Shown piece after piece: positions 1,437 through 7,400 of a DNA stretch of 64,000 bases (its first letter is position 1; each line of letters opens with the position of its first letter). Origin of the DNA: Oopsacas minuta (lineage: Eukaryota; Animalia; Porifera); contig JAKMXF010000003.1 in the NCBI GenBank assembly GCA_024704765.1, positions 1-64,000 on the forward strand, in the 5' to 3' direction. A program made the translations under genes and the position numbers. A model generated the notes under the pieces. The model had not been told where the DNA came from and made no database searches. It worked only from the letters and a program-made list of their open reading frames with translations.

Positions 1437-4400
1437 ATGGCTACTGCAACTGTTGCCATGGAAACGGAATCGCAAATCCCAATCCCACAGACAGTTGGAC
1501 TATCAGGTCAGATCCCAAACTCAGCTGGGGGGTATTCTTGGCCGATTAGCGATATGGGGAGACTGAGAAGGTTCTTGTGTCTCGGTTCAGAAGGAGGAAG
1601 TTATTATATCAACGAGAAGAAACTAGGTAATTCCAATCAATTCTCGTTAAATCTAATCTCAAGGGACCGTGATAATTCCTTCGATATAACCGATGAAATA
1701 TATGTATGTTACTCTAACGGTTTAGGAACATATTTGGACAGTTTAAGACTTCCTGTATTTCTATACATCATGTTCTATCTTTCTAATTATATATAATTAT
1801 AATTCTAGGAAAGGAGAATGCTAAAACAATAGTAAGAATGTTAGACACAGGAGAAGGTCAGGATGTTGTGATAGAGATTCTGCAGTATAGTACTGAAGGG
1901 AGAACTGCTAAGCAAGAGCCTATCATATTTGCACTTGCTATCTGCGCTAGATTAGGTAAATATGTTTGTTTGTTTGTTTGTTTATTTATCTATTCTCTCA
2001 CAATCCTTTAGGGGATGCAGAGACAAAGAAATCGGCCTACATAGCTCTCCCTAAAGTTTGTAGAATTCCAACTCATTTATTCAGTTTTATTGAATATTGT
2101 GAATCTCTCAGTAAAGGAACTGGATGGGGGAGAGCTCATAGAAGAGCAATATCTGAGTGGTAAGGTTATATTATAATCAATGCGACATCCACACCGAGGT
2201 GCAAGGGAGTCAGAAAATCTGCCCAATTCCACGTTTTTGTAGAGGCATTCGCTCTATTAATTTTCACTCCGTTTCCAGGAGTTCCTTGTTTCCACAGCCC
2301 CGTTCCCGTTTGTGTGTGTTACACTGTAATAATCATTACACTAATTACGAATTAGGTATACAGAGAAAGCTCCATATCCGCTCAGTATCTTAGTTACCAA
2401 ATATCAACAAAGGAATGGGTGGTCTCACAGAGATCTACTGAGACTTTGTCATCTTAAAACTGACAGAGATGAACTCAATATAATATTCAGGTATATATTA
2501 AGCCCTATACATATTTCACTGATAAATCACATTCCATTCCCGTATCCTAGATACATAATTAAAGGAATGGATCAAGTAATAACTGATTACGAACATTTGA
2601 CTTCAAACCCGGAAATATTAAAAGTATTTGAGTTCTTTCAAGCAGTTGAAAAAGCGAAGTCTTGTACGAAACCAGAAGATATTATCCCATTAATTAACAT
2701 TTATGGCCTGGTTCGTGAACACATTCCAACACCTTTGCTTAGCAACGCAGAAGTATGGCGAGCTCTACTCCAGAAAATGCCAATGACAGCTATGATCAGG
2801 AATCTGGGAAAGATGACAGCGATAGAATTATTAGCTCCTCTATCTGGTGAGTTAATTTCTCTCAATGGTTCTATTTTTAGAATTTTAATAATTAAATTAA
2901 TAAAAGTCAAGCAAACCTATTTGAATGGATCTCTACACCCAATCAGAAGCGGGGGATTTCACTAACATACTGTATGCACATAGACAATATAAATAGAAAA
3001 TAAAAATATAATAATTATTCTGAAATGTCAAGTTTGTCGAAGAAGAGAACTAAATCCGCTTACGAGCTGCAGAGAGAGAGGAATATTCGTAGGAACGAGG
3101 AGTTGTTGAGGAAGTTAGGAATTAATATTAGGGAAAAACAGAAGCCACTTCCTGTTATGAAAGATTCATCAGATTCTGAGACTGAGAGTGATCAGGATTG
3201 GAAACCGGAAGAGATAAAGAAAACAATAATAACAACAAAATTCGAACCACCTATGAGAAATACGTATGATCCTGATGAAGTGAAAAATGTTGTAGAAGAA
3301 TTTGAGAGAGAAGAAAACGAAAAACGAAAAGGAGTTAAACGAAAATCAAATTTCCCGAATAATAATATTCCCAAGAAACAGTTTGAAGGAACCACGAATA
3401 TATTCACTTTCGGGAAAGCGAAACTAAAATCTAAGGATTTTGACGCTGAAAAAGATAGTATCGATAATCTCCAAAATGTAGAATTTCGTTCAGATGAAGA
3501 AGTCCCAACAGATAGCAAAATTAGCTATGAGGAGTTTCTACAAAATCGTGAAGATGCCGAATTAATGGAACATGAGATTGCTTTAGTAGGAAGATATATC
3601 CGACAACAGCAATTAGATGAAAGGTTAGACTTACAAGATAATGATAAGCAAACCGATCTCTGTCATGAGAGAAGTAAGAGGCATTTGAGACATGTGGATT
3701 ATACCGAGGAGACATTAACAACAGAGGATAGCTATATCTATTGTGAGGAATGTGACGATTTGCATTTGGGTGATTGTCCAGTATTTGGAGAACTTTGTCC
3801 ATTAGATGAGTCCGCTATGATTATTAGTCCTCTATCCTCCATCCCTATTCCTAAGCAATTGATACTTAAGAACTCCTCAATTCCAAAGGCAGGTTTAGGA
3901 ATATTTGCAACAGAGACCATTGCAATACGTACTAGAATGGGCTCGTATGCTGGCACATTTGTAAGGGGATCTGTTGATAATTTACCGAATGAAAGTGAAT
4001 ATTTGTGGCAGATAAAACGAGGCAATGGGAAAGCTGTATGGTATATTGATGGAGAGGATTTGACCAGGGCGAATTGGATGAGATATGTGAATTGTGCTCG
4101 TCATGAGGATGAACAGAATTTGGTAGCGTTTCAGTTTAAAGGCAGAATATATTATAGAACTTATAAAGTTGTAAATCCTGGAGATGAACTTCTTGTATAC
4201 TACGGGGATCAATATGCCAAACACCTTGGCATAGGACAATTTGATAATATTGATATTAAGACGGTTGAAAACCCACCAATTGAGATGTCAACTGAAACGA
4301 GATTGTATAAACCTAACCGCAAAGACAAACCTTTTAAGTGTTCAGAATGTAATTGCTCTTATTCTAGCAGAATGACTTTGATTGCTCACTCACGTATACA

Positions 4401-7400
4401 CACAGGTGTTAATCTACACGAATGTGAAGTGTGTAATAAGGTATTCATTAGCAAGACAAAGCTAACTGTACACATACGTACACACACAGGAGAGAAACCA
4501 TTCAAATGTATCATATGTGATAAAAGGTTCAGCACAGATAGTAATCTTTCTGTACACATGCGTATACACACAGGAGAGAAACCATTCAAATGTACTATAT
4601 GTGATAAAAGGTTCTGCCAAGATAGCAATCTTTCTGTACACATGCATATACACACGGGAGAGAAACCATTCAAATGTACTATATGTGATAAAAGGTTCAG
4701 TAGTCCTGGAGAGCTCCCTATACACATACGTATACACACAGGAGAGAAGCCCTATGAATGTATATATTGTAAAAACAAATTTAATAACTCTTCTACTAGA
4801 AATAAACACCAAAAAATTCATAAAAACCAAACAAAATATAATAGTTAGATAAATTTGATTGAATTAAATAATATTATCACTTCTATTCTCTCTCAAATAG
4901 TCCTCACATAATACTAGTCACTAAATGTTTCTTCATTTTACTTATTTCCATATCTAGACGAGTCACAGCTGGTATGTAAGAAACTAAAGAACGAGTCAAT
5001 GCTAAAATCAGCTAAAATCCATCCATTCAACTTACTACTAGCACTCAAGGTATATAAAGCTGGTAAAGGAGATAAGGGCTCTCTATCATGGACACCTGTA
5101 CCTGCTATTGTATCTGCCTTAGACGCAGCTTTCTATCTATCTTTCAAGTTTGTTGAACCGACTGGAAAGAAGTTCTTACTAGCCCTTGACGTCAGTGGAT
5201 CAATGACATCTCCTGTGAGTTATGACCCGATTAAGCATACAGTAGACTCCACTTGGCCAGAAACAGAACCAAACAAAATAGTTATTCCTGCTTGTATTAA
5301 TCACATTGCATGTTATTAGATCCTTGGTACTCGTGTCGTCAGTTGTAGAGATGCCTCAGCCGCTATGGCAATGGTTACAATGAAGACTGAAGCTAATTTC
5401 CATGTTCTGGGGTTCTCTCATAAACTGGTAGATGTTCCTATCAAGTAAGTATTAAATCCTCCAAAAGTATTTTACCAAATTTCTGACGAATTTCATACAC
5501 TTGGACAGTGGACTCCGCTTGACTGGGTCACCGGTTAATTCATTGCCAGTTTTTACCTTCGTTTTATTGACACATTGTAAATTCATAGTGCTTCGATGGA
5601 TCTGAATACAGTAACTGAAACTATTAGTGCTATACCCATGGGAGCTACTGATTGCTCACTGCCATTTGAATGGGCACTGAAGAAGAAAGTGAATGTAGAT
5701 ATATTTATTGTGTACACAGATAATGAAACTTATTTCGGAGCTATACACCCGTTTGAAGTTTGTTTATTTCCAGTTTCTATATGTTGCGTATGTCGGTTAT
5801 AAGCACCATCCTCTGGAAAACAGTTCTCATATATTCCAGGATATTTATGCCGGTTATAAGAACAGGCATTGCTACTCACAAGGGTGTTCTTATAACTGAC
5901 ACGTCCACGGTAATCGAGATATTATTATTCGTCCGGAAATGATTGAAACCTGGTTTATACGATTTGGCTATAAGTAAGTTGATATTATTACAAATTCTCA
6001 GAGTAAATAGCATACCGAATTTCCAAATATTTATAAGGTTAACAAATTACTTAATATGATAAGCAAAGTACCCTGTTGTTATTGTTGTTATTGTTGTTAT
6101 TGTTGTTGGTGATGATTTCTAATAAAAAAAATATCATAAGTCTTACAGACATAATGTAAAGCTTATATTATACAAAATAGAGTTTAAGAAATAATAATAA
6201 ATATGAATTCGACAATTTGTCTTTGATTATTTGCTATTATCTCTCTACCAATAATATCGGTAATATACCTTGTGGCTTAGCATAATGCTTGTAAGTATTA
6301 GGTTTCTGGATAAATAGGAATAATTATTTGATTGTATTAATCCAGTGTTTATGAGTGAACATACATCTATTATCAGTAATATTGTAGAGTCTTATGACTC
6401 GATTATCTTCCGAGATTTCGAATCGTCCGTCTTTGGATGGATCAGAATCGGTCTGTCAACATCCGCGTTCATTCTTCTCTCATTCTCTCTTGTCCATATT
6501 CTATTTTTCTCTGCGATATACCGGAATAGGCTTAAGTCCCTTCAGAAACAATTCTACAACTCTCATCTTAAGAACTATTCCCGTATGTACCTATTCCTCG
6601 CAGTAATCCAATTCACCACAGCTATCTTCGAATTATCTGAACTAACTGGACATTCTATTATCAGCTCTAACCAGGAGATTTTCAACGAATTCACGTCTCA
6701 CAACGGTTGTATCATACATGAATACACTACCATGGCTGCTTTATCAAATTCTCATTTCTTCTTCCTTTTACCACCGATTACTCCAAACTTAATATTCCCG
6801 GTCTTATTAACTCTAATATACAGCTTCTTAATATTTACTGCTAGGATGTTTTCCCCGGATAACAAAAAACTGAAATCGTATTTGTATCGATTACACGTGT
6901 TAGTGTGGACTACTGTACAAGTATCGCTTCTCCTAATCCTCTACTCAAATCATTGGACGCTAATCGTTGCCCCCTTGTTCTTCGCTATATTCGTTATAAT
7001 CGATTTTTCTATGTTCGTTATCTACGCAGTTTCCCTTAAGAAAATTCTCCATAATACCTGTAAGGACGTCATGTGCTATACAGACAATACAAGAGACATA
7101 TCACAGATAATTAACTTCTACAATTTGTATAAGAGGTGTATAATATTTCTCGTTATTTCTCTCTTACTTCTTTCCCTATCCCTGGTCCTAACAGCCATAT
7201 TTGACGGTGTTAGAAGCTTCCTATTGAATGATTGTTTCTATAAGATAGATAAACTGGATAATGCGCACTATGAAACAGATCATATCTTGGGTAAAGTGGT
7301 AGTAATATCAATTATAATGTTGAAGTTCTCATCCATGGTTATTTTTGATTTATTTGTGGGTGCTTCTAGCGTAATTATTTGCGTTAAAGTTGTGGTATTC

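Follow-up and report, generated by a model that had tools for sequence, protein, structure and literature searches.

The 64,000-nucleotide window analysed here, from contig JAKMXF010000003.1 of the glass sponge Oopsacas minuta, contains near its start an intronless open reading frame (ORF) of 607 amino acids that represents the PRDM9 orthologue of this sponge. Pfam assigns to the protein a PR domain (2e-38) and six C2H2 zinc fingers. Its nearest solved SET relative is PRDM9 (PDB 4c1q, 9e-38 over residues 231–403), with PRDM12 at 1e-24, and its nearest named proteins are PRDM9-like. The extreme N-terminus carries a short amphipathic helix followed by an acidic stretch with a conserved tryptophan, and comparison of sequence profiles identifies this helix as a homologue of the latter half of the ancestral KRAB-A box in bilaterian PRDM9. 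The central elements are as follows.

3025–4848, forward strand: intronless PRDM9 orthologue of 607 residues, identified from the ORF, Pfam, the 4c1q match, the gene tree and RNA contigs.
3055–3126, forward strand: N-terminal amphipathic helix (residues 11–34), identified as the homologue of the long helix that forms the second half of ancestral KRAB-A from hhalign, AlphaFold2, conservation and the ratio of nonsynonymous to synonymous differences (pN/pS).
3127–3207, forward strand: linker and serine-rich acidic stretch closing with D..W.P, corresponding to the ancestral KRAB-B region and its conserved tryptophan.

The translation of 3055–3126 given by an earlier sequence-only reading is confirmed from the window. 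AlphaFold2, supplied with an alignment of 38 sponge, cnidarian and bilaterian proteins, places a helix at residues 12–30 with a predicted local distance difference test score (pLDDT) of 88–90, and gives the linker and acidic stretch low model confidence, which suggests that this part is disordered. Across the same 38 proteins, residues E14, R17, N20 and G32 are invariant and N24 nearly so, and the conserved positions E14, R17, N20/I21, N24, L27/L28 and L31 lie on one face of the helix. Downstream, W59 is invariant with D56 and P61 nearly so, and the acidic D..W.P stretch aligns with DSDEEW.P of bilaterian PRDM9. Such one-face conservation, combined with a disordered acidic tether, is typical of a docking element.

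The Oopsacas protein genuinely begins at the conserved ATG just before the helix, because several features of the locus converge on this start. Specifically, the open frame reaches just 7 codons beyond the ATG on its 5' side (614 versus 607 residues), and all nine close relatives recovered from ENA and Logan assemblies place a methionine 7–12 residues before the same helix. Conserved CCAAT/TATA elements precede the ATG, the RNA-like sequencing run shows no splice joint leading into the 5' end of the ORF, and a hidden Markov model (HMM) of the first half of KRAB-A finds no match there. The 25 helix codons, compared across five loci, show pN of 0.05–0.22 and pS of 0.57–1.25. Since their synonymous sites are saturated while the amino acids are conserved, codon comparison marks the helix stretch as translated and under purifying selection. 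An untranslated helix stretch, with a transcript starting near 3050 and a protein starting at Met44, would fit the coverage of the RNA-like sequencing run, whose contigs cover 3050–4361 and further and leave 2970–3049 empty, and would also fit a TATA-like element lying just 37 nt before the ATG. This reading is scarcely credible: the helix codons keep their amino acids despite synonymous saturation, the ATG and helix are retained in every relative as well as in transcript-based models of other sponges and cnidarians, and the run consists of contigs only, from which neither transcript ends nor the expression level can be read.

Homology of the sponge helix to KRAB is established through a profile of 35 bilaterian PRDM9 KRAB-related regions. 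This profile is genuinely KRAB because 14 of its 35 members pass Pfam KRAB at E<0.01 and because it matches the solved KRAB domains of ZNF93 (PDB 7z36, 5e-6) and ZNF568 (7w5q, 3e-5). The sequence-only reading had proposed a profile comparison with PRDM9 KRAB, and its outcome is positive. The sponge N-terminus aligns in hhalign at 97.3% (E 2.4e-11, columns 28–84), the helix alone against bilaterian KRAB-A only at 96.2% (score 36.5, columns 29–52), and sponges together with cnidarians at 99.4% (E 4.6e-21, columns 24–90), every alignment beginning in the middle of the A box. For the helix alone, 300 column permutations give a mean score of 8.9 (standard deviation 2.7, maximum 25.7) and the reversed sequence gives 9.2, so that 0 of 300 permutations reach 36.5. 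When the genome (61.46 Mb, 365 contigs, about 36% G+C) is searched in six frames with the bilaterian profile, one place is returned, 3055–3246 (E 0.0044, profile positions 29–96), and a sponge profile likewise returns this gene only. Moreover, a sponge profile spanning the N-terminus and SET domain, searched against 1.84 billion representative proteins, retrieves PRDM9-type proteins, and the same helix pattern occurs in 51 of the 156 proteins collected.

The correspondence extends beyond the helix itself. In HMMER, the PRDM9 proteins of Owenia and Branchiostoma align to the sponge profile unbroken from the helix through the end of SET. Bilaterian proteins carry F.DI..YF.KEEW..[LM] before the helix and P.P.FM followed by DSDEEW.P after it, which are the described motifs of ancestral KRAB-A and KRAB-B, including the conserved B31 tryptophan (PMC8835667). 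The Oopsacas module thus shares with the ancestral KRAB of bilaterian PRDM9 and SSX its N-terminal place in an orthologue, the helix pattern E..R..N[IVM]..N...[LM]...G[LIF], a spacing one residue shorter than in modern KRAB, and an acidic stretch ending in W.P. It differs in lacking F.DI..YF..EEW and in a weak or absent P.xFM motif, the corresponding position reading K-P-L-P-V-M in Oopsacas, R-P-T-F-Q or R-P-I-Y-Q in some relatives, and nothing similar in others. Retrieved mammal-type PRDM9 reads W-E-K-[IA]-R-Y-R-N-V-K-R-N-Y-..-L-..-I-G-[LF] at the helix. The gap-free match to mammalian PRDM9 noted earlier holds at E, R, N, [VI][KR]RN, L and G. Modern KRAB-A, as in ZNF93 and ZNF568, is a more distant likeness reached through the PRDM9 profile, the counterpart being its long second helix. 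The Oopsacas protein, in contrast to modern KRAB-A, has no direct Pfam match, no MLE motif, no first half and no modern-type B box. The place of the MLE motif is occupied by N-I-R-R-N with the shorter ancestral spacing.

The caution in the sequence-only reading that similar helices occur in unrelated proteins is disfavoured, as no unrelated family in Pfam or PDB matches better. Pfam scans of the whole protein, its first 60 and its first 242 residues return only sub-threshold noise at the N-terminus (iHKD, 13.8 bits; IstB, 11.7 bits). A sponge-only profile searched against PDB returns Rab27B and designed repeat proteins at noise level, the latter with 3–4 bits per repeat and a summed E of 6e-4, and a search of the ESM Atlas with residues 1–66 returns unnamed clusters at 0.85–0.86, below the threshold for a lead. 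Pfam KRAB run over the whole genome gives no match, with controls equally silent, so that this search carries no information. A generic amphipathic helix, charged and with LG[IL] at its end, that resembles KRAB by chance or convergence could account for the silence of Pfam KRAB, for a motif of just about 21 residues and for the designed helical repeats found by the sponge-only profile. It is nevertheless very improbable, as shuffled profiles never come near the observed score, the match sits at the same N-terminal place in orthologues with D..W.P downstream at similar spacing, the likeness forms a graded series from sponges through cnidarians to bilaterians, and the genome holds a single such match, set against PDB matches worth only those few bits per repeat.

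The first half of KRAB-A is absent, as the sequence-only reading had stated. The helix is preceded by only 12 residues, unrelated to F.DI..YF..EEW, the frame closes 7 codons upstream, and the profile alignments start from column 24–29. A first-half HMM of 20 positions scores no more than 8.3 bits anywhere in six frames of the 64-kb window and no more than 9.2 bits in those of the 62-kb Hydra PRDM9 locus and four relatives' loci. The Owenia locus, as a control, scores 25 bits, and this control is partly circular, Owenia being in the training set. In Owenia, both KRAB-A halves lie in exon 1 (residues 1–62). In Hydra an intron falls inside the helix, and exon 1 (residues 1–18) is too short for placement by tblastn. 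Exon shuffling was considered as a source of the first half and rejected, since the Owenia halves share exon 1 and the Hydra intron lies within the helix. Exon structure does not settle the polarity.

The motif, which the sequence-only reading had suggested seeking in other non-bilaterian PRDM9-like genes, is found in sponges and cnidarians. With protein models used as the databases supply them, each of the three sponge classes sampled has the short form, as do anthozoan and hydrozoan PRDM9. Its distribution is as follows, the ENA proteins being called hexactinellid-like or calcarean-like from tree position and similarity only.

Hexactinellida: short form in the Oopsacas group.
Calcarea: short form in Sycon ciliatum and three similar ENA proteins.
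Demospongiae: short form in Ephydatia muelleri and Halichondria panicea.
Anthozoa: short form in Nematostella, Oculina, Porites and Acropora.
Hydrozoa: short form in Hydra, Hydractinia, Clytia and relatives.

Cnidarian N-termini match the bilaterian profile from column 26 onward (99.2%, E 8e-20). All long forms whose taxon was looked up belong to Bilateria, comprising annelid, nemertean, mollusc, chelicerate, echinoderm, amphioxus and vertebrate proteins. A maximum-likelihood tree built from the SSXRD, knuckle and SET columns only, excluding the N-terminal trait columns, recovers Porifera, Cnidaria, Bilateria and Cnidaria plus Bilateria with Shimodaira–Hasegawa-like approximate likelihood ratio test (SH-aLRT) values of 95, 83, 96 and 95, respectively. 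Within Porifera, Calcarea branches first, followed by Demospongiae together with the Oopsacas group, and the gene tree matches the species tree. The proteins are therefore orthologues, and the long form occupies a single branch.

N-terminal remodelling also recurs among these proteins, as the models themselves indicate, because the helix is absent from PRDM9-like models of the demosponges Dysidea (four models) and Amphimedon and the first half is reduced in a spider. The Parasteatoda model of the latter keeps the helix and retains only a remnant of the first half.

The sequence-only reading had left the choice between a proto-KRAB and a truncated KRAB. The proto-KRAB is favoured, the short form occurring in all helix-bearing sponge and cnidarian PRDM9s sampled and the long form in bilaterians only. 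By parsimony, the short form is probably ancestral: with the root between sponges and the rest and the long form on a single branch, one gain on the bilaterian stem is required versus two losses. Secondary truncation, in which the metazoan ancestor had a full KRAB-A whose first half disappeared separately in sponges and in cnidarians, for instance through use of a downstream start codon, is unlikely and yet not without support. Truncated "k" paralogues of cnidarians arise repeatedly, according to a preprint (10.64898/2026.09.07.749791). The spider model has a reduced first half, the helix-less Dysidea and Amphimedon models indicate that N-terminal loss happens, and with both Owenia halves in one exon a shift of start codon could equally well delete the first half or add it. 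Truncation would, however, demand at least two independent and identical losses that became fixed throughout the sponge classes sampled and in the two classes of cnidarians. Furthermore, the short forms are strongly constrained with a signature of their own, unlike sequences in decay. Returning to the ancestral short form, a two-step origin of KRAB is given slightly better than even chances: the helix and acidic tryptophan motif would have been present in the common ancestor of sponges, cnidarians and bilaterians, F.DI..YF..EEW would have been added only on the bilaterian stem, and non-bilaterian "full-length" PRDM9s would be natural equivalents of the mouse deltaKB1 allele.

In mouse, the KRAB region of PRDM9 is needed for meiosis and mediates all interactions mapped by two-hybrid assay, notably that with CXXC1, with no binding of TRIM28 (PMC5688218). 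The deltaKB1 allele, in which the first 42 residues are gone, produces a null-like meiotic phenotype with a protein level that is also reduced (Imai et al. 2017, PMC5688218). This protein starts at the methionine before G-E-W-E-K, which is the alignment position of the natural start of sponge and cnidarian PRDM9. The two differ in that deltaKB1 is an engineered loss within a full-domain lineage, whereas the sponge form occurs naturally and is conserved under purifying selection. Recruitment of TRIM28 by the Oopsacas module would not be expected by analogy, since even the mammalian PRDM9 KRAB does not bind TRIM28 (PMC5688218).

Together, these observations indicate that the first structured element of the Oopsacas PRDM9 is one predicted amphipathic α-helix at the extreme N-terminus, succeeded by a probably disordered linker and the acidic serine-rich D..W.P stretch. 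This helix–linker–tryptophan module is the sole KRAB part of sponge and cnidarian PRDM9. The minimal module is most probably ancestral, and the bilaterian stem would have gained the N-terminal half of KRAB-A ahead of it, inside the same first coding exon. If mouse PRDM9 is a guide, the module probably docks partner proteins through the conserved face E14–R17–N20/I21–N24–L27/L28–L31, a putative function through which a DNA-bound, histone-methylating protein would be linked to downstream machinery. The account as a whole, that of an ancestral, partner-docking module homologous to the second half of KRAB-A and a KRAB-B-like region, is considered likely.

Several points count against this account. 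Pfam KRAB (PF01352) gives no match at E<=10 for the whole protein, its first 60 or its first 242 residues, and 0 of 15 sponge and cnidarian N-termini match at E<=1. Because Pfam KRAB is blind to the sponge helix, KRAB membership is assigned by transitive profile evidence, and by Pfam's own sequence criterion the feature is outside canonical KRAB. The RNA contigs start at 3050, downstream of the ATG at 3025. The polarity rests on parsimony with limited sampling, one gain versus two losses, in a sample without a ctenophore, placozoan, homoscleromorph, scyphozoan or complete octocoral PRDM9 N-terminus. In addition, the helix-only module is insufficient in mouse, as deltaKB1, starting at the equivalent residue, is null-like, though its protein level is reduced.

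The remainder of the Oopsacas protein follows the PRDM9 plan and comprises three further elements.

3670–3729, forward strand: divergent SSXRD-like motif R..R......Y.E.....D, immediately before the zinc knuckle.
3733–4233, forward strand: pre-SET zinc knuckle and PR/SET methyltransferase domain, identified from Pfam, the 4c1q match and invariant residues.
4333–4824, forward strand: six C2H2 zinc fingers identified by Pfam, fingers 3–5 forming an 84-bp tandem array at 4466–4748.

Pfam SSXRD has no match in the Oopsacas protein. The SSXRD-like motif lines up with RYP.R....Y.E.E.PDDD of other PRDM9s, and its residues R219, Y226 and D235 are invariant in the 38-protein alignment. The knuckle residues C240, C243 and C251 and the catalytic tyrosines Y308, Y377 and Y393 are also invariant, the tyrosines being common with mammal-type PRDM9. 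Three catalytic SET tyrosines are a stated requirement for PRDM9 in the preprint 10.64898/2026.09.07.749791. The PR/SET domain is well folded in the AlphaFold2 model, with pLDDT mostly above 90. Between the N-terminal module and the SSXRD-like motif, residues 168–204 (3526–3636) form a long, confidently predicted helix running from I-S-Y-E-E-[FY]-L to I-R-Q-Q, which is strongly conserved within the Oopsacas group and was not seen in other PRDM9 proteins. The finger array is partly homogenised, with a period of 84, 3.4 copies and 86% matches in Tandem Repeats Finder. One DNA-like contig omits exactly one 84-bp unit (joint 4572>4657), which may reflect a length variant or repeat collapse during contig assembly.

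The same genome contains a single 262-residue ORF with zf-CW (2e-11) and PWWP (8e-9) domains, at 931–1716 on the reverse strand of its locus. This is the architecture of ZCWPW1/2, readers of the histone marks of PRDM9. The other zf-CW match in the genome adjoins a MORC-type domain. As support for a hotspot role of PRDM9 in Oopsacas, the ZCWPW-type ORF is only circumstantial.

The whole PRDM9-like gene lies on the same strand within an intron of a Ro60/TROVE2 gene, with TROVE-type ORFs on both sides.

2847–4957, forward strand: Ro60/TROVE2 host intron (GT..AG), the upstream Ro60 exon ending at 2846 and the next starting at 4958, enclosing the entire PRDM9-like gene.
2938–2996, forward strand: putative own promoter with CCAATCAG at 2938–2945, TGTATGCAC at 2971–2979 and TATAAATAG at 2988–2996, 37 nt before the ATG.

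The RNA-like run has the terminal part of the upstream Ro60 exon as a loose end before 4957 and shows four GT..AG joints at other Ro60 introns. The NCBI model at this locus (819 residues, "Ro60-like") joins the PRDM9-like ORF to downstream Ro60 exons and looks like an annotation chimera. The elements CCAATCAG, TGTATGC and TATAAATA are conserved across three species, occurring in the same order and 32–41 nt ahead of the ATG both in the window and at the loci of two relatives (L006 and L007), and weaker versions are present in two others (L008 and L003). A promoter function of the CCAAT/TATA elements at 2938–2996 is plausible, and the arrangement points to a compact promoter and a very short 5' untranslated region inside the host intron. 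The Ro60 intron is the site of the gene in Oopsacas and in its closest relative, where the copy (L006, 1629–3384) also lies behind a TROVE exon, on a contig of 2x coverage, and is broken into ORFs of 331 and 249 residues by a frameshift or a sequencing error. In three relatives (L003, L007 and L008), the gene lies among opposite-strand PDZ-domain exons beside an Arf-family gene pair. The nested gene may have swapped its host, or its neighbourhood may have been rearranged.

The largest family of vertebrate transcription regulators is founded on the KRAB module, whose origin earlier work places in bilaterian PRDM9 (Birtle and Ponting 2006, as cited in PMC8835667), and the curated catalogue of ancestral KRAB-A is confined to Bilateria (PMC8835667). 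The Prdm7/9 subfamily is already known from non-bilaterians in a study that does not discuss KRAB (PMC4760075), and the Oopsacas genome paper leaves PRDM genes unmentioned (PMC10280926). A 2026 preprint (10.64898/2026.09.07.749791) scores the KRAB of cnidarian PRDM9, with its two exons, as intact, and the missing first half goes unmentioned in the text consulted. The cnidarian proteins carry the same short helix-plus-tryptophan module as the sponge, the difference being that an intron splits the helix in Hydra and the sponge gene has no introns. A full-text search combining KRAB, PRDM9 and non-bilaterians found no publication, and within the literature searched the presence of only half the domain in sponge and cnidarian PRDM9 appears to be undescribed.

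The present comparison gives the second half of KRAB-A and the B-like tryptophan motif an earlier origin, in the common ancestor of sponges and eumetazoans. It suggests that the first half is a later bilaterian addition, providing a concrete stepwise model for the birth of KRAB. The preprint 10.64898/2026.09.07.749791 argues from an intact cnidarian KRAB to a vertebrate-like hotspot function, yet those proteins start at the deltaKB1 point. If the two-step reading is true, non-bilaterians either designate hotspots without the first half or use their PRDM9 for something else. Both CXXC1-type binding by the short helix alone and the contribution of the added half can now be tested.

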